A stretch of 63,626 bases of DNA, filler included, from Pelomyxa schiedti (GCA_020536535.1; 8 parts of 8 records of this genome joined end to end with filler, not necessarily neighbours in it); one strand, 5' to 3'; numbered from the whole stretch's first letter, positions 35,876-46,589 are shown. The notes: generated by a model not told the origin, from the sequence alone. Numbers and translations are program-made.

Positions 35876-36348
35876 NNNNNNNNNNNNNNNNNNNNNNNNN
35901 NNNNNNNNNNNNNNNNNNNTTAATTAATTAANNNNNNNNNNNNNNNNNNNNNNNNNNNNNNNNNNNNNNNNNNNNACCCCGCCAAGTGTAAAGAGCCCCC
36001 CAAACTCCGATTTTTTGATGGTGGTATTTTCAAAAAACGCCTCCTCAACCTGTCATTTTTAACGCTCAATTCTCCGGTCATTTGCACACCGGTGTAAGTT
36101 TAACTTTTTTCCCTGTGGTTTTCCGGTGTATGCCTTTAAAGAAAGTGGGATCAAGGGCCACAGGGTGAGGAGCAACTTAGCCCTTTTGCCTGACCTTAGC
36201 GGAATCATCAACCTTACCGCCTAGGCGTGATGTTTACCATACACAGCACGGACGGCAATACAAATTTGCCCTGCAAAAACTTTGTTTTTGCTCAGGTTAA
36301 GTATTATCAGTCAGAGAAAAATTTAGTGTTCTTGAAGCACTAGCTGTT

Positions 36349-36838
36349 CTATGGTGTAGCAAATTTACTTGTCCACTCTTTCGCGGTTTGAGCGAAAGTG
36401 GTGGGAGCAGAGGAAAGCACCGCGCCAACCTCTGGGTTAATGCATCTTTCCATGGAAGGATCCGATATAAGCATGAACAATTCACACAGCACGTCAGAAG
36501 CTCTGTTCGACATGGACCAATCTTGGACCACATTTAAGCACACTTCAGACGCATTCACACCAGGGTGGAATATCTTGGTCTCAAAAACTATGGCTGGTGG
36601 GGCAAAGGGATAGTTTGAATTGAATTCCAGCAAAACCGTAAAAACTCCTCCCTCGTAAGGTGTACCCTACTGCACGTTAGTCATGTGAAGCAAGCACAAC
36701 GAGAATGACCTGGGCACCGGCGATCTGAGCTCGCCATTTGTTTACGTTGTTGTCAACTAACTCAACTCCTATGCACCCCAGCGGTAAATCGTGCTTGAGT
36801 TTTGTGAGCTCGCCCACTAGTTGCCTCTGCCTGGACAT
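36349..36838 (-). CDS. Ubiquitin-conjugating enzyme E2 (divergent UBC4/5-like), 2 exons
   Basis: MSRQRQLVGELTKL...WRAQIAGAQ/GTPYEGGVF...YPFAPP...TKIFHPGVNASEVCL. Intron 36667-36709 has GT..AG and a GACTAAC branch site. Confidence 0.92.
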
Positions 36839-37715
36839 TTTTGATTTTCTGTACGGTCGTTGTTCTTCGAAACTGATTTGGTCCTCGTTGTTCCCAAGTT
36901 GTTGGACCAACTCACGAAAAGCAACGGCACAAACACACAAACAAAAAACCAAAAAACCTACCAATAAACAACGAGCCTCCATGTTCACAATATTCATTAA
37001 GCTGAATGAAACTATGACTTTTTCTGAGCCCGAAATATCTCAAACAATGACGGTATGGCATTTCACAAAGGCTTCCGTAGAACTAAAATACGAAGGTGGA
37101 ACAACTTATCGGGGTCATCAAACGCCGCACTAGGGACCCCACTGGCGACTATGCCCTCTTTTATTTGGTAAAAGCCCTACAACCACAGCACACACTGGAG
37201 TCTTATGGGGTGAGAAATAACTCCACAATACATGCATCCAAAAGGTAGTGCTGCTCTTCCTAAGTTTGTTACTACCTCTATTACAGAGGGCGTGGTGGCG
37301 ATTCATGTGAATAGATTATGTTCAGCCAAAAGGGTTGGAAAACAATAAAGAACACAAGAAATAAATAACCGGTTTTTCATTCATTGAAAATCTGAAGCTT
37401 AGAATAACATCTACCGGGAAATGTTATTCCGGGTTCAATCTCGGCGCTGCTTCGACAACTCTGACATTTGCTGAATGCCTCAGTCCCGACCCTGCACGAA
37501 CGTAGGTCTTGATGGTAAGGGTCTTCTGTTGGTACCTCTACCCCACACCTGCGTGTTAAGGCTCTAGCTATTGTCCACTCTAACTTCTAAATTCTATACC
37601 TTTACACCCTAGAGACCTGCCTGGATTGGGTTTGGGTTGCTTGATGGGGCTGGTTAACGAAAAACCCAACAGCTATTTTCTTCAAACCTACATCCAGTTG
37701 TCGTTTTCACTTGTT

Positions 37716-39595
37716 TCAGAGAGCCCAGGTTTTCTGTAAAAAAGTTAGTTCATGATGTGTAAAACTTGGTTGCAACCAATCTGCTTCCAGACGGGTGTAA
37801 AACAATACAAGTGCATTGGAAGTTGTAACCCCAGTTGAGAAAGTCCCGCTCATTTGAGTGACAATTGTATCAGAGATGCTCCAATGCACACCATCCTTTA
37901 TTACATGAGCTGTGTAGTGTCCACTACTTAGCTGCGACCCCTGATGTTCCTGGGAAGTGCAAATTAGTGCTGGAAAAACTACTGTTTGGCATACTGAAAG
38001 TGCATAGAGCCTGTAGGAAAACGTCCCACTACTCAGACAAGAAAAGTTGGTATGAAGAGGCACTGAAACAGGCGTGCGGATCTTGGCTGATGTGTGGTCA
38101 AATCGCTGGAGATGAATAATCACTATTGGTGGAAGCAGTATGACAATAGACATTTTCTGAAGGGATTGTTTCCCACACTGCGGGCACCCAATAGTCTCGG
38201 GCCGGGAAAAATCAGAAAGACAATCTTCTAAAGGAACGGTTCTGCTGCGATCGGGAATTGGAATGTCTAAAAACGCCATTGGAGAATATGAGGAAGTGTT
38301 CTAATGCTGTGATTAGAGGGAAGATATCGGTATACAAATAATACCCAGCCGCAACAGCTCTCTGTGCAATCCATTTTTTCTAAAGTTAGGCCATGGAAAA
38401 GGTCCACAATAATTGAACTGTTGGATCCTAAGTGCTCATTCCAGGCTTCAAATGCCAGAGAAGAGGCAGCATCTCGTGGTATTTCCAAAGGCCTTGGTGT
38501 TGTGGTGCAGATTCCATTTAGCTCTTGGTGAAGAGCGTCAAGGAGAAGAACCAAGCATTCAAATGAGTCCTGCTGTTGAGTACCACTAAATTGATTTGCA
38601 ACTTGGGCTATTTGTGACTTCAAATTCACTGGAGATATTACCCTACTGGCTGAGTGGAAAGCTTGAATAACCTCCATAAAGCTCCTGGTGAGTCTTCTGG
38701 CTGAAGAGCTCCTTTTCTTTCTTTTCATCTCTTTCTCCAGTGCACCGCTTGTAAAGAAATCAACTAGAGGAGATGTTACCAATAAACACTGCAGGGTACT
38801 ATTCATGTAGCATGTATTCCCCAGATTTTGCAACCCTTTTGGTGTGTAGGGTCTGTGCAAAATTTGTTTGGCGTCGGGCTGTTTAATACTTCTTAAGTCG
38901 TCAGTGCAATGAGAAGGAAGAGCCGAAGGACATAAATGTGAGCTCTGTTGCACTTCTGGCTGTTTGTGCAGAGGTGGAGGTGAAAGGGAGCGTATATCTG
39001 TATCTTCATTGATGCATATTTTGATCGCGTGATGTTGGGCCGTTGGTGCACTTTGTTGTGGTGGTGTAGGAGGTTGCACTGACCCCACCTCTGTTGCGCG
39101 AACGTCTGCACACGATAGAGGCCCGATAAGAGTGGTAGATTGTTGGGGAGCCTGCTTGTCACAGCATTGGACCTCTATGACGCTGTGCTCAGAAGGCACC
39201 TCTTTGAGGCCAGTGATAATCTCAGAAGGAGAAAGAACTTCATTCGTAGCAGGACGGTGGACTACTACTGCTTCCAACTGAATAGTGCTCTGTGGATCGG
39301 AAATGGTATTCGTGTGCAGCGGCTCATGTTTTGACTTTGGAGACCCCCCCGAGCTCACAGTTTTGTTGGTTTCTCTTTTTGTTGTTCGGTTTGTGCTCTG
39401 TGTGGATCGCGGAGCATCGGAAGTAAACAGGCTTCCCGGTTCCTCTGCACGTGCAACTGGGAGTGGCTTAGGCTGAAGAAGTTGTGAAGAGGCTGTTCTT
39501 CGTCGTTTGGTTCCGCTCTTTACGAAGACCCAAAAAAATAGCATACAAATAGCCGCAAACCCAAGCCAACACAAAGCGAACGCTGTGCTGTCCAT
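37716..39595 (-). CDS. USP-family (peptidase C19) deubiquitinase with N-terminal transmembrane anchor; 3' end may extend further
   Basis: Cys box GLQNLGNTCYMNSTLQCL, QQDSFECL, IHLQRF, His box HQGSQLSSGHYTAHV...WSISD. N-terminus MDSTAFALCWLGFAAICMLFFWVFVK followed by KRRR. Confidence 0.92.
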
Positions 39596-39791
39596 TTGCC
39601 CAATGCAACGAGAGTCTGCGATAAGGTGTGTAGACACTCGCGTCAGGCCAGGTAAATTTCCCCTAGCACCGATTCTAGTTCCGGAAAGTGCTCCCAACTT
39701 CGTCGGGAAAGTTGGTCCTAGCCAAGTTGAGAGAAAGCAAGTGTGAAAAACGAAGGTGAATTAATTAAACTTCTTCACAACCGAGTCGGAC

Positions 39792-41055
39792 ATGGCAGCC
39801 AACCTAACCATACAGTTGGACAATAGTGCGAGAGGCTCCCCGAACTGTGAAATCACAGTACCAGTGTCTGCTACACTCGCAGAGCTTCAGACGGCTGTTG
39901 AGACAGCGACTGGGGTCAAGATCGGGTTCCAGAGCCTGATATTTGAAGACAAAACCATTGCACAAGGTGCTGATGCGACCAACACATCGGTTACAATTGC
40001 TTCTCTGGGCATGATACCTGGCCAAACGTTGGTTCTGGAAGTGACGGTTGCTTTTCCCACCTTGAACATTTTACTCATTTCAGTTTCTTTCACTCCAGAA
40101 AAGTGGAGGGCAGAAAACAAACGCCGATCCAAAAATGTCCATATCTACTGCGACTGATGGTCACCTGGCACAACTTCCCTGTGGACACTTCATCTCCCCA
40201 GACGAGCTTACCGGCTACATACGGTAAGGTACTGATTGTTGTCCTTTGACATTGTGGCAGTTACATTCTTGGTCTTGGCAGAATTGCCATCCAGTGCCCT
40301 TTCAAACCATGTAGGTCCTCTCGTTACACTTTTCTTCTTGCAAACACTATGTGCAGCGAAGACGGGTACCGCCTGTAATCGCAATTTCACAATGGAAGAA
40401 CTGGGAGCTGCCGCCAGATTGACGATTGCAGAAACTCGCGAGTTTGAGGAAAAAGTGGGAGACAACTTTTTACTAGCATTGGGAATGCAAAACTGTCCAA
40501 AGGTATAGGTATTCATTCCTCCAATATCTCACCAAAGGTTTTAGTGCAATATCATGTGCCAACGTACAGTTCTTACCGACCCACGAGTAATTTGCTGTGG
40601 AAAGCCATGGTGTTGGTACTGCAGACGAGAATGGAAGGGCAGCGACGCTGTATTGTGTGGTAATGAGGACTGCCCCAAAAAGGACCCATTCATCCTCATT
40701 TTGGAGCAAGCAGAAGAAGCTGTATGGGCTCCCTGTTTTGTTGTACCTTACCGACTCATAAAAGCTGGCCTACGATGTTCCTATTTTCAAAACTAGAAGC
40801 TGTGTTAACTGTGGGCTTCTAATCACACACAATGGGGTGGGTATTTTTATCTTAGGATAACCACTACTGTCATTGACTCCTAAAAAACAGGCATGCAAGC
40901 ATATGCTCTGCACAAGATGTCAAGTTGAATTTTGCTTCAGCTGCTTGAGCCGAAAAACAGCAGGCAAGTACCCTCCTTCTTGTGGAGCCTACAGCACCAA
41001 GTGCCCAAGACACCCTAGGCAAACAGTCAGGGCTTCCCTGCCATTAGGTTCCTGA
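39792..41055 (+). CDS. Ubiquitin-like domain (ending in GG) fused to an RBR-type E3 ligase
   Basis: Ubl fold ITVPVSATLAELQTAVETATGVKIGFQSLIFEDK...TIASLGMIPGQTLVL, spliced to KSGG. Degenerate RING1 (LPCGH). IBR CPKC...CCGKPWCWYCRREW. RING2/Rcat RSCVNCGLLITHNG/ACKHMLCTRCQVEFCFSCL. Confidence 0.85.
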
Positions 41056-41427
41056 TTTCCCCCAACATTCAGGTGTTCTGCTTCTTAAAAACTTCATACT
41101 TGCCTCCTGTAGCAACAATTGTTTTGTGAACGTGTAGCTTTATTCTATTTTACCTCGTGTTAACAAACTCTCTATTGTTGTAGTGCAACAAAACACGAGG
41201 AGGGTGTTCTTCTTTTCATCATGGATTTCAGACATGCAACCTTGGCACCAACGAGAATCATTGCGTAAATTCGGGTAACTACAGGAACCTCTCCGAACAT
41301 CCAGAAGAGCTTCGAGTATAACTGGTTCACGCCGACTATGAAAAACAACGTGACACGTTGACAGTAATTTCTTCGATTTTAATAATAATCGTGTTCCCCA
41401 GACAGGGCTATTTCTGTTGTTTAACAT

Positions 41428-44400
41428 TCACCAATGGATGTGGAGAGGTGGAAGGGACGGAGTGTCTTCAGTACCGATCACCTTTTTCCTTCAGTTACAA
41501 GCAAGTTTTTGAGGGTTGGTTGTTACCTCCAAACGGAAAAAATTATGGTGTTCAGGGAGTACCCCTGGTAGTTTGGACAGATGGAACTGCATACTGACAA
41601 CGATTTAGTAACATCTTTAAAAAAGAAGGAAACCTTTTGTTCAGATCTAAAGTAGACCCAAGCCTAAGAAAGACAACGATATCATTGAAGAGAATCGCTT
41701 CTACGGTTGTTTGGTATTTCCCCTTTTTCAATGTTAGGTTGAATAGTAACTAGTAAGCTTACTTCATAATGCCGAATTGTCTCCTGGAGAGTAATGCCAG
41801 GTGGCAACTCCAAGTGATCCCACTCTGTCCAAGCCCCATCTGATGCAGGTGGAAATGGCTCAACGAAATTCCATGCCTCAATATCATCGAGATTTAGGAA
41901 TGATGATCTCAGCTGTTCAATAGACAAATTAGCGGAAGCTAGCTTCACCAGCTCAATGCATTGAAGGCTAAACCACACACTATTACTGTGAAAGACTTTG
42001 TTAGATTCATTTACCCGGCAATAGCAGCTGTGGTGGAAATCAATGCAGGGATAATATTTCCAATTATTCTTCGAGATGAATGAAAGTCTATGGGATCAAT
42101 GCCATAGTTATTCGCTCTTATCACTGCAGCAGCATAGACAAACGGCATATGATACAGGGAGTCATCATCCTATCAAGGGGTGGTGAGATCCTTGGATAAG
42201 TGTACAACAATCTCACCTTATCAAATTTTGCAGGTAGGAAGTCCGCGGGCAGTGCGGCAGAGAGGTCACTAGCACTTTGAGTGGCAGTAATGTTGAAATT
42301 CTTTGCCCTAATATTAGAAGCAGACTGCACAAATGAAGCATGCAAGGACTTCGTGCTATCGTACTCAATTGGTTGAGGTTTTCTTCGAGGGGGCACCCAG
42401 AAGGTTTCTAATTTTACACGTGTCACAACGAATGCTATTACTTAATAACTGATTTACCAGTTGCAGGATCCTCTGAAGGAGGGTACAGCACAAGTACATG
42501 TTTGACATCATCATGAAAAAGTTTATGAAAGATCTTACAAGACCAGTCCACGCAGTGAGAAAATGTTGTTGGGATCCCCATATCACTTTCCTTGTTTTTA
42601 ATAAAAAGAGCTTCAAATTGGTCACGTGCCCATTGTAAAGTATCTTTCATCTCCACAGGGAAAAACTTGAGTGTGCACAGAGGTATGGAGCTGGTATTTC
42701 CATCAGTTCCATGATTTCCAGCTCCAAAAGACTCAGTGATGTGGGGAACAGCCACTTGAACATTTCCCTCTGGTCCAATTGTACCACCATCCACGAATGG
42801 TTTGGAGTGAATTTTGGATTGTAGGTCTAAGTATCTGCGGGCTGACATGGAGTCTAATGCAGAGATAATTACATCGATTGATGAGAAAAATTCGTAAGTA
42901 AAAACATCTGGACTGAAGTGAAAAAGGAAAGGGTCAGAACAAAAATGTACCTGAGCGTTGCAGCATCATGTTGTACGCAGTGGCATTAATCTCGGGGTTA
43001 ATCTTTAAAGCCGCTTTGACGGCAACCTGGGACTTGGGTAACCCTATGTCGGTGGGGCGGAAGAGAAATTGCCGACTTAGGTTGGAGTTTTCGATGCTAT
43101 CCATGTCAACGACATGCAAGTGTCCTATGGTACTTAGTAAACTCAAGAAAAAAACCTCTCACCATTTCTTTCTGTGGCAGCCCCCAAAAGACTCAAATTC
43201 TTGATAACTTCACATCCTATAGCACCGGCTCCAGCCTAAAGAAAGTGTAAACCGACTAAAACAGAGCAGGGATATACTAGCAAAATATTTGATTTTCTAA
43301 GCGCGTCATGCAAATCCTCCCCGATTAAAGCGGCTTGGGCTCTGTAACGAGTAGGAACTCGGTCTGTCAAAGGTACCCGTTTTGTGGATATAATTTCGGA
43401 AAAGTTAAAGAGTAGCCACTGGTCAATTGGGTTTAGGCGATGGGAAATAATTTTGATGACTTCGTGGCAGAGTACTCCACCAATGAAGGAAATCTAATTG
43501 AAATAAGAGGGAGTAGAGGAACAAACTTACAATGGGTGGAAAGGAGCAGCCACACGTTGTGGCAATCAAGGACACGAGATCGAGGTTTTCATGGGTGTTG
43601 TAGTTGAGATGTCTGTAAATGTTCAAGAGTTCTTGCTCATGTATCTGTAGGCTCGTGAGGTCAAAGAATATCTTCTACAAGTTACAGTGTTTCCTGGTTC
43701 TGGGAGAGTCGAGTGTTTGTCAAACCACATGCAAGCTGAGAGAAGTGCTAAGTGACACTGAAAATATGTGTCCTGCAGATAAGGAGCATGAACCTTGATT
43801 TTAGATTCAGGGGCTCCAGAAATAAGCTCAGTGAGAGGACTCTGGTATGAAGTATGAATAAATAAAGAGTGAACTTAGTGTTTACTGCGTTGAGGACGCA
43901 GGAATCCCGCCATAATATTAAAGTGCCAGTGGAGATTGACACTGAAGAGGAAATCTCCCCAACCTTGTATGTGCATGTGCCTTGAGTTCATTTGAATGTG
44001 AAAGAGGTATTAGAAGAATAACCAACTCGACAGAATGAAAAAAGTGGCTGCTTCGTTTCTTTATTGAAGGTGAGATCCCCAGCACCTTCAAAGTAACCTC
44101 GAAAAGTGTCCGGAAACAAATCAGATGAAGTCGTCACAATGCAATCCTGCAGATGAATAAGAGGAGGGAAAAACCCACCGTATCTTACATGTAAAGATAC
44201 AACAGGAGAGCTACACAGCGGTTTGCCGCCATTTTGGACACAGAAAGAGGTACCAAAATCATTGAAAATAAATCCAAACCCGCCAAGAGAAGTCACCCAC
44301 AAAAATGTGGTATGGTGATTTCTACATAAAATATCCAGCTCACAAGCGGTATTAAACGAGTACCCAGTGAAAAGTACAATCTTTTACATAATTGAGAAAA

Positions 44401-44845
44401 AGATTATTTGAGAAGGAATGAACGTCATGGCACTCTATTATTCTTGGTGAAATGCTTGGTTCAACAGCAACTTGAACAAATTCACTCAATTCAGTGAGGT
44501 GAGGCCTTACAGCTTCAGCAGTGACTTGGCCTATGTCTTTGGCACTCAAAAATAGCTACAAAGGATGAGTGATTCGTGTGAGTCGATTGTGAGCGCAGAC
44601 CTGTGAGCCAATGTCAGTTGGTGAAACAAGCGAGGAGTCACTTATGGACACGCGGTCCACGCCCATAAGTACCAAGTTTTTCGCTGTGTGTTACTTAGAC
44701 CTACTCCAAACGTAGAGTTACCTATTTCTGTGCCGATATCCTTTTGTCCAACAATCAACACTTTGCATGTAGATAAACATGTTTGCACGTCCGCGCCCAG
44801 AGCATAAATCTGGCGACTGTACCGCTGCCATTGGTCGGCTTGCAT
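41428..44845 (-). CDS. Divergent monomeric UBA1-type ubiquitin/Ubl-activating enzyme E1, multi-exon
   Basis: RYSRQIYALG, AKNLVLMGV, GAGAIGCEVIKNL, DMDSIENSNLSRQFLFR, ALDSMSARRY, GNVQVAVPHITESF, catalytic SIPLCTLKFFP (Cys codon 42675-42677), IIPALISTTAAIAG, UFD WTEWD...; ends ...PSLPPLHIHW*. Confidence 0.93.
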
Positions 44846-45365
44846 GTTTAAACAAAACAATAAATTCAAATTGGTCTTGCTGTTCCAACTTGCCTCCCGG
44901 CCGCAGAGCCCTGTCTCTGAGTAGTGTACGGGTGTTATGTAGGTAAAGGCAAGCACGCTGTTCACTGTTTGGGGTCGCAGACTTCCACACCTGAAGAACA
45001 TGCATATCTGGTAAATAGGTTTAAAAAGGTCATGGTTGATAAAAAAATTGTTTTGCCATTTATGTCAACAGAGACCACTGATTACAAAAGTAACTAACGC
45101 CACTATTTTCCATCCCCACACAAGCCACCAAAGACACTTTCCCCAGCAATAAACACCAATGCCACCAGCAACAACAATAACACCATTATGTGCGCCTGGT
45201 AGCTAAAAAAAAGGTGATTGGTTACTTTGCTGTGAATACAGTGGTGTGCCCCTTTCCTTTCAAGGTCTCCTGAATCTCCCTCAGGGTCCCACAACCATTC
45301 GTCTGGCAGAGTTCCCATAAATCCATCTGATTAGAACTGTACTTAGAGTATAACGACGCGAAGTC

Positions 45366-46589
45366 ATGAGCACGGGAGGCATAGGCGGGTTTCTCCGTGG
45401 GATCACGGCGTCGCAGGACTGTGGTGCGTCGCCCAACCAGTTGTCGTCGTTGGCACGTGCGGTAGGCGGTAGAGGGGGCGGCGGATCTCTCGTTGCAATG
45501 CAAGATCGTTGGATGCGCGTTGCACAGAGGGTGTGTGCCATTGATTACTTTTGTTGTGTGTTTGTTGTTTGTTTTTTTTTAATAAACCACAAAGCCTCCG
45601 AATGTAGTGCCACTCAGCAGTGAGCAGATGACAGACATCTTACACACATTCATTCATAGCACAATGAGCGCAACTCCAATGCCTGTGTAAGTTCCTTTTA
45701 ATTCACATGGGCTTTGTATTCACTTTTCCTTCTTCCAGTGGAATGATTCCAGATCCTGGACTATCTGCCGTTGAGCAAATGAAAATCATGCAACGCTCAC
45801 AAATGTTAGCACGGCACATGTGTGCGGATCAACCTCCAGAATTTGCCGATTCACAAGTGAGTTTGTGCTCGTCGTAGGGATTTCAATATTCACACTTTAT
45901 CAACACAAAATATGCCTAGGTAGGTGCTATTCTTGGTACGCTTCACATCTCTCCTGAGCAGCTGGAAGCATTTGATGCTGGTTGGGATGCTGGTGAATAC
46001 ACAGGTCAGTTCGAAGGAGCTTGGGCTTCTCAAACTGGAGGTGACTGGGCTGAAGAATTTACTGCAGCACCACAAGTTCAACTTCCTCAGGACCAGCCTG
46101 AAAGTACATTCTATTTCTGTTTGACACCACGAGATATCAGTTCTAACTTTTTGCCGCAGCTTGGGTACAACAATTTGCTGAGCAAGGAGAGGCAGAAGAA
46201 TTTTTTGACAACACAGCTGATCTTGAACTTGAAAAGGCTTGGAACGCAGAGGAGTCCGCCGCCGCACCTGCGAAGTTGTCAGACCCCATTGAAAGAGAAC
46301 TCGAGGTTTGTGTTTCTGAGAACTGTTTGTGTCAATGTAATAAGTTTACAGAAACAACGATTGCGTGAGGCAACAGGGCGGCTCGTTGATGCTGTGAGTG
46401 ACCCCAAAGTTAGAGCAACCAAATTCATGCAATTTATGAACCAACTTCGCACTGGGGAGGTACCTTCCCCATTTCCTAACCATGCCTCAGTTTTGTTTAT
46501 CTCTAAAATAGATGGAAGTGAAGGACAACACTGTAGTAGTCGGAACTGCTGCGAACACAACAACAGGGGAAGACTGGGCAACTGAATTT
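45366..46589 (+). CDS. PEX5: PEX5, peroxisomal PTS1 receptor, N-terminal half (TPR domain lost beyond gap)
   Basis: N-terminal Cys motif QDCGASPNQLSSLA. WxxxF motifs DWAEEF, AWVQQF, DWATEF. PEX7-binding-like box DPKVRATKFMQFMNQLRTGE. Confidence 0.85.

Follow-up and report, generated by a model that had tools for sequence, protein, structure and literature searches.

Five adjacent genes, within 8.5 kb of the genome of Pelomyxa schiedti (an anaerobic amoeba of the Archamoebae), encode an E2, a predicted free precursor of a ubiquitin-like protein (Ubl-2), a USP with a putative membrane anchor, an apparent RBR ligase which carries its own N-terminal Ubl, and a UBA1-type E1. Because five different roles of the ubiquitin pathway, all held by divergent proteins, are found in such a short span, these genes may well form a self-contained, lineage-specific cassette for ubiquitin-like conjugation, in which the fused Ubl most likely remains part of the ligase. 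We give this reading a probability of about one half.

The window is the whole stretch of DNA that was analysed (63,626 nucleotides, filler included). Its piece 35976-46589 is the entire contig JAHLWZ010001260.1 of the P. schiedti assembly GCA_020536535.1. Three single-cell transcriptome runs of one study (X1, X2 and X3) supplied RNA contigs, which were compared with positions 37650-43600. The Ubl-RBR ligase and the USP are represented by public proteins (P0001 and P0011, respectively), and in the models of Ubl-2, the E2 and the E1 each exon was examined individually. The features are collected in Table 1.

Table 1. Positions of the five genes in the window, with the exons of the Ubl-RBR gene and its first intron.
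Feature	Position	Strand	Description and evidence
E2, UBE2D/UBC4-like	36349..36838	-	about 148 aa; unannotated (no NCBI gene); Pfam UQ_con 68 bits
Ubl-2	36981..37314	+	82 aa predicted, unannotated; exons 36981-37052, 37096-37244, 37287-37314
USP-type deubiquitinase	37733..39595	-	576 aa (P0011), annotated; Pfam UCH 172 bits
Ubl-RBR, exon 1	39792..40046	+	Ubl residues 1-85, end ...TLVLEVT; RNA contig over 39984-40046
Ubl-RBR, intron 1	40047..40098	+	52 nt, GT..AG, phase 0, between T85 and K86; X2 RNA joint and P0001
Ubl-RBR, exon 2	40099..40223	+	KSGG, short linker, start of degenerate RING1 (LPCGH...)
Ubl-RBR, exon 3	40261..40310	+	RING1 helix and CP motif; RNA joints X1, X2
Ubl-RBR, exon 4	40357..40502	+	end of RING1, helical linker, start of IBR; RNA joints X1, X2
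Ubl-RBR, exon 5	40545..40721	+	IBR zinc finger; RNA joints, translation, Pfam IBR
Ubl-RBR, exon 6	40765..40836	+	start of RING2/Rcat, CVNC; RNA joints X1, X2, X3
Ubl-RBR, exon 7	40891..41055	+	Rcat with predicted catalytic Cys277, tail, TGA stop; RNA contig extends to 41126
E1, UBA1/UBA6-type	41428..44845 (start approximate)	-	NCBI model 41428-44666

The Ubl-RBR gene and its product

The first-pass annotation of the region 39792-40110 had placed a GT donor at 40047, and its coordinates hold when the sequence is re-read: the start codon is at 39792, the donor occupies 40047-48, and the acceptor AG is found at 40097-98. It had also proposed that this intron interrupts the tail of the Ubl, and had called for RNA-seq confirmation of the junction. 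The joint is indeed present, in one contig of one run (X2, with 62 nt on the upstream side), which passes from 40046 to 40099. The exon that follows opens with AAA AGT GGA GGG (KSGG), as predicted, with the GG codons at 40105-40110, and the spliced tail reads TLVLEVT/KSGG (the slash marks the intron). The alternative donor at 40041 and acceptor at 40083 are not seen among the RNA contigs of the three runs.

Exactly the same spliced product exists as a public protein, KAH3732045.1 (P0001, 329 aa, P. schiedti), which was returned by a HMMER search with the first exon; this model may share the same transcriptomes, and is possibly not independent of the RNA joint. The downstream introns (40224-40260, 40311-40356, 40503-40544, 40722-40764 and 40837-40890, 37-54 nt long) are each spliced out in two or three runs. 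The RNA joints thus place the Ubl and the ligase on a single mRNA, as the fusion proposed at first pass supposes.

A contig of run X1 begins at 40113, three bases past the GG codons, with the SMART template-switch oligo. An internal transcript start at this position would give a Ubl-less ligase from Met98. This idea was not retained: contigs also end in that oligo within the reading frame of the USP (38518, 38905), so truncated cDNAs are common in this data set, and a truncated cDNA is the alternative here. A G>T difference at 40647, seen in an X2 contig only, would turn Ala227 of the IBR into Ser; it is allelic or else due to an error of assembly.

NCBI names KAH3732045.1 "ubiquitin-ribosomal 60S subunit protein L40B fusion protein". 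No Ribosomal_L40e match is found in the protein by Pfam, in which the ubiquitin family reaches 13-17 bits only. The identity as a ubiquitin-L40 fusion was rejected, since the L40 domain and a near-identical ubiquitin are both missing and the C-terminal part is IBR/Rcat. Judged by its domains, KAH3732045.1 is a Ubl-RBR ligase, and the public name is a misnomer.

The assignment of the part that follows the Ubl to the RBR-type ligases relies on sequence comparison. Residues 260-310 align to residues 293-344 of ARIH2 (E 1.2e-5), and the Rcat alignment extends to ARIH1. The motif NGACKHM faces NGGCNHM of ARIH2, which predicts that Cys277 (codon 40894-40896) is the catalytic cysteine. An IBR is present (Pfam 26.8 bits, cut-off 24.3, in two stretches), with the cysteine pattern CPKC...CC...CWYC...C in the translation of exon 5. 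By language-model features, the neighbours of the protein are Ubl+IBR proteins, parkin and HOIL-1. Matches to parkin in the PDB have E values of 0.15 or worse, and Pfam gives no match in the protein to the parkin-type families zf-RING_12 and zf-RING_14. A single-sequence AlphaFold2 prediction of the entire protein reaches a pLDDT of 36.

RING1 is separated from the GG by a linker of only about 10 residues, and no RING family of Pfam matches residues 90-200. By eye, C113-x-H115 and C139...C150 are kept, with no CxxC ahead of them, and zinc ligands 1, 2, 4 and 5 are replaced (S118 and E121 occupy the fourth and fifth positions). One zinc site of RING1 is apparently gone, and the domain falls short of the eight-ligand C3HC4 pattern; with four of the eight ligands missing, the ligase may work in an unusual manner.

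The fused Ubl and its diglycine

Residues 1-89 are predicted to have the beta-grasp fold of ubiquitin, in a very divergent form. The fused Ubl is about 20% identical to ubiquitin, its score against the Pfam ubiquitin family (17 bits) is under the threshold, and its matches in the PDB are all Ubl domains, with E values of at least 0.06. The AlphaFold2 model, which depends on aligned Ubl repeats taken from distant search matches, has a pLDDT of 76 and the order of strands and helix of ubiquitin. Foldseek searches with this model give 398 matches at E ≤ 0.001; the best 50 of the 398 are nearly all Ubl or ubiquitin chains, and the TM-scores of the best ones reach 0.88 (normalized by target). The matches include the Ubl of Dsk2, the ubiquitin of Caldiarchaeum (second-best), ISG15, SUMO1 and NEDD8. 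The fused Ubl has a 7-residue insertion in the loop that precedes the 3-10 helix.

The exact register with ubiquitin that had been claimed for the tail is borne out both by the alignment and by the AlphaFold model. In that alignment with the Ubl repeats, made with MAFFT, LVLEV-TKSGG shares columns with FHLEL-RLRGG of a terminal ubiquitin unit, so that G88-G89 correspond to G75-G76 of ubiquitin. In the model, strand beta5 covers residues 79-84 and the tail is loose from residue 85. The tail has Thr-Lys-Ser at ubiquitin positions 72-74 and Glu at position 70, and the residue that follows the GG is Gln90, not a proline.

GG is found only once in the whole 329-residue protein, and its occurrence at two fixed places has a probability of 0.6% given the composition. 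None of the 18 internal, non-terminal Ubl repeats of the comparison set has a GG in register. The GG of the fused Ubl is therefore more than chance. A prediction of the complex between the catalytic domain of the USP (P0011 residues 248-576) and Ubl residues 1-89, run without the use of alignments, gave a score of 0.00, which speaks neither for nor against an interaction.

The first-pass annotation had suggested a check of GG conservation in homologous Ubl-RBR proteins, with a Dictyostelium family resembling DDB_G0292642 as a possible case. With the Ubl exon as a HMMER query against 1.84 billion representatives, only KAH3732045.1 itself is found below 1e-10; since the query was the Ubl part only, distant RBR relatives with an unrecognisable Ubl could escape this search. 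Nine further matches, mostly poly-Ubl repeat proteins, are significant only by the summing of repeats, and two of these nine are other repeat proteins (P0003 and P0009). Similarly, a word search with the whole Ubl-RBR protein returned only itself, exon 2 of Ubl-2 used as a query gave no candidate homologue, and a scan of metagenome and viral contigs with Ubl-RBR and an exon of the E1 gave nothing. The literature search returned no paper that deals with DDB_G0292642, with a cluster of this kind or with ubiquitin genes of Pelomyxa.

Ubl-2 and the neighbouring enzymes

A six-frame scan with the alignment profile of the fused Ubl gave one additional match, between the E2 and the USP. This is Ubl-2, whose predicted protein reads MFTIFIKLNETMTFSEPEISQTMT / VEQLIG...STIHASK / RGRGGDSCE (slashes mark introns). 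The two predicted introns, of 43 nt (GTATGG..GAAG) and 42 nt (GTAGTG..ACAG), have splice sites read from the sequence. Exon 2 matches residues 35-68 of ubiquitin in PDB chains without a gap, as well as residues 23-68 of a ubiquitin repeat, and none of 2000 shuffles does as well. Against the Pfam ubiquitin family, Ubl-2 scores 20.5 bits (E 4e-4), and sequence comparison finds no similarity to the fused Ubl. A frame-shifted N-terminus (MTVWHF..., from the ATG at 37047) was rejected as read-through of the 43-nt intron, because the start at 36981 yields a full-length Ubl.

The tail of Ubl-2, KRGRGG, falls in the register of ubiquitin across the second predicted intron, and retains Arg72 and Arg74. 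DSCE and a stop codon come after it. Ubl precursors usually have this form, a GG tail plus a short C-terminal extension. Ubl-2 is thus a candidate for a second "hidden diglycine" and for the cluster's own modifier and, on the strength of its predicted tail, seems more likely to be the tag of the cluster than the fused Ubl.

The E2 and Ubl-2 are head-to-head, about 140 bp apart. The E2 has two predicted exons (36838-36710 and 36666-36349) around a 43-nt intron (36667-36709) read from the sequence. It is about 38% identical to UBC4/UBE2D in PDB alignments and has the catalytic cysteine, with a one-residue deletion on either side of it, and HPG instead of HPN.

The USP and Ubl-RBR genes are also head-to-head, with 196 bp between their ATGs. 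Three introns of the USP gene are confirmed by RNA. The protein consists of a hydrophobic N-terminal segment, about 230 residues without a family match, and a complete catalytic domain (254-570), whose nearest relatives are 35-41% identical. Residues 1-26 (39535-39595, minus strand) comprise the hydrophobic stretch FALCWLGFAAICMLFFWVFV, followed by KSGTKRRR. This N-terminus looks like a membrane anchor, as in USP30, the enzyme which opposes parkin and has an anchor at the same end.

The E1 gene lies downstream of Ubl-RBR and is convergent with it. The protein has two ThiF repeats, an SCCH domain with the catalytic cysteine (PLCTLK) and a UFD-like end, and scores about equally against UBA1 and UBA6. 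The crossover loop beside the catalytic cysteine (42650-42720, minus strand) reads TESFGAGNHGTDGNTSSIPLCT and has a 3-residue insertion; DGNT replaces the DPPE that is common to human and fission-yeast UBA1 and to human UBA6 in PDB alignments. The E1 and the USP that had been noticed beside Ubl-RBR are thus both in place, and both are divergent paralogues. No RNA contig of the three single-cell runs falls on 41232-43600, the part of the E1 region that was compared. The NCBI model of the E1 (850 aa, start at 44666) seems to miss the first ThiF motif, and YSRQIYALG...KVLIVG is found in an open frame (44642-45001) upstream of the annotated start.

In two short divergent intergenic regions, 36838-36981 (E2/free Ubl) and 39595-39792 (USP/Ubl-RBR), a Ubl-bearing gene is paired with an enzyme gene. 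This arrangement suggests that Ubl-bearing and enzyme genes are regulated in pairs.

Fate of the fused Ubl and comparison with known systems

We infer the following enzymatic steps, and with them a fate for the fused Ubl. The USP would trim the Ubl-2 precursor between the tail KRGRGG and the extension DSCE, the divergent E1 would activate the trimmed protein and hand it over to the divergent E2, and Ubl-2 would then pass to Cys277 of the RBR and on to substrates. The hydrophobic N-terminus of the USP suggests that conjugation would take place at a membrane. The fused Ubl would remain on the ligase and act in cis, in gating or docking, as in parkin and HOIL-1. Its GG would then be a relic of a modifier ancestry, or a secondary, occasional cleavage site.

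By analogy with parkin, the odds that the fused Ubl stays attached are about even. Retention is favored because Ubl-2 keeps Arg72 and Arg74, because a 1:1 supply of a modifier with its ligase would be odd, and because known Ubl-RBR ligases keep their Ubl. Indeed, Arg72 and Arg74 are residues read by UBA1-type E1s and USPs (for position 72, this comes from work on UBA1 and on NEDD8's E1). Modifiers usually come from separate small genes, and a catalytic E3 made 1:1 with its modifier would supply it poorly. To our knowledge, all the characterised Ubl-RBR ligases retain their Ubl. Moreover, the presence of Ubl-2 in the cluster means that the fused Ubl is not needed as its modifier. The first-pass annotation had presented the fused Ubl as a candidate novel modifier whose precursor includes its own E3; of this proposal the intron, the KSGG, the register, the fusion and the E1 and USP neighbours stand, while the role of modifier is weakened by Ubl-2.

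Other observations speak against retention. The rarity of an in-register GG in attached Ubls (0/18; 0.6%) is the single strongest hint of cleavage. The Gln after the GG and the tail that is loose in the model may be further hints, and so is the 196-bp divergent region shared with the USP, both genes being represented in the same transcriptomes. The same observations favor the reading in which the fused Ubl is a conjugatable precursor: the USP would cut after G89, the adjoining E1 and E2, divergent like the USP, would activate the released Ubl, and its own RBR would ligate it, maybe as a second tag. N-terminal Ubl fusions with a GG end are known substrates of USPs; FUBI-eS30, for example, is cut by USP36 (PMC8354635). 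This reading nevertheless appears rather unlikely. The searches returned no homologue that could show conservation of the GG, the characterised ligases and the problem of a 1:1 supply count against it as they count for retention, and Ubl-2, in the same cluster, is a separate precursor whose tail resembles that of ubiquitin more closely. Thr-Lys-Ser and Glu70 are unlike both ubiquitin and Ubl-2, so that a single E1 and a single USP would need to take two very different tails. A complete private system with two GG-ended tags, the free precursor and a cleavable fusion with the RBR that uses it, is doubtful too, and if anything more so.

That Ubl-2 is unannotated and depends on two predicted introns speaks against the cassette. 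It is improbable that the locus holds nothing special, that is, a GG that arose by chance in a Gly/Ser-rich linker, ordinary ubiquitin genes that happen to be clustered, and a Ubl-2 which is a pseudogene or an over-read. The orphan status of the fused Ubl, with its sub-threshold Pfam score, would fit this, as would the lack of annotation of Ubl-2 and the E2 and the lack of RNA contigs on the E1 stretch. However, five roles in 8.5 kb are far beyond chance, in particular as genomes hold only a handful of E1 genes, and the E1, E2 and USP are clearly more divergent than housekeeping orthologues. The gapless match of Ubl-2 exon 2 to ubiquitin, unequalled by the shuffles, and the two introns of typical form which restore one frame ending in RGRGG also argue against it.

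Least probable of all is that the fused Ubl is cleaved and not conjugated, its GG being a protease site and its removal activating the ligase or helping it to fold: the register, the loose tail and the rarity of the GG apply equally here, the short linker sets the Ubl beside RING1, where its removal could unmask the E2-binding side, and FUBI is generally viewed as removed without a further role, but nothing in the sequence separates this case from a retained or a conjugated Ubl.

In eukaryotes, the genes of Ubl pathways are generally regarded as scattered, while archaea and bacteria use operons. If the five genes do form a cassette, it would be a rare, compact and tractable example of a new Ubl pathway that arises in a eukaryote; its five parts could be co-expressed. 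It would also put directly to the test whether an E3-borne Ubl can be released as a tag. Were the fused Ubl cleaved, a ligase would join the known partners in ubiquitin-fusion precursors. Were it moreover used as a tag, this would be the first case of a modifier produced as part of its own E3, and cleavage by the USP would at once activate the ligase and free a tag that leaves a distinctive SGG remnant. Without cleavage, a parkin-like Ubl with a perfect GG tail would call for caution in taking a GG alone as proof of conjugation.

Among known systems, parkin and HOIL-1 (RBCK1) likewise have an N-terminal Ubl on an RBR with a catalytic Rcat cysteine, and are the nearest clusters by language-model features. 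Their Ubl stays on the protein, where it regulates or docks, and we know of no GG at the ubiquitin register at the end of the parkin Ubl. The Pelomyxa Ubl, in contrast, ends with GG in register and is followed within about 10 residues by a RING1 which seems one zinc site short. Pfam finds no match in the Pelomyxa protein to RING0/UPD, REP, NZF or LTM, and its sequence similarity to parkin is insignificant. In the Ariadne ligases ARIH1 and ARIH2, the Rcat of ARIH2 is the best sequence match, with its catalytic cysteine aligned. However, only the Rcat matches significantly, and the Ariadne domain, the UBA-like domain and the acidic N-terminus are all absent from the Pelomyxa protein.

UBA52, RPS27A and FUBI-eS30 also have an N-terminal ubiquitin fold that ends with GG, followed by another protein on one mRNA, and USP-type enzymes cut these precursors. 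The partner is a ribosomal protein in these fusions and an E3 ligase in Pelomyxa, where cleavage is hypothetical.

The ISG15 (UBA7, UBE2L6, USP18) and FAT10 (UBA6, USE1) pathways similarly use a UBA1-family E1, a UBE2D/L-like E2, a USP and a GG-ended Ubl, and domains of ISG15 and FAT10 rank with the top matches by fold and by sequence. The ISG15 precursor has a short C-terminal extension, as Ubl-2 does. The genes of these pathways are scattered in vertebrate genomes, whereas the Pelomyxa parts all lie within 8.5 kb; the Pelomyxa modifiers are single-domain and unrelated in sequence, and the set includes an RBR with a Ubl of its own.

The operon of Caldiarchaeum subterraneum (Ub, E1-like, E2-like, small RING and Rpn11-like) also has modifier, E1, E2, E3 and protease side by side. 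Its E1 has a single ThiF, its protease is of the JAMM type and its ligase is a simple RING. The modifier is a precursor trimmed by the neighbouring protease (PMC5654768). Unlike this operon, the Pelomyxa cluster consists of eukaryotic, intron-bearing genes on separate, divergent promoters, with an E1 of the UBA1 type, a USP and an apparent RBR ligase.
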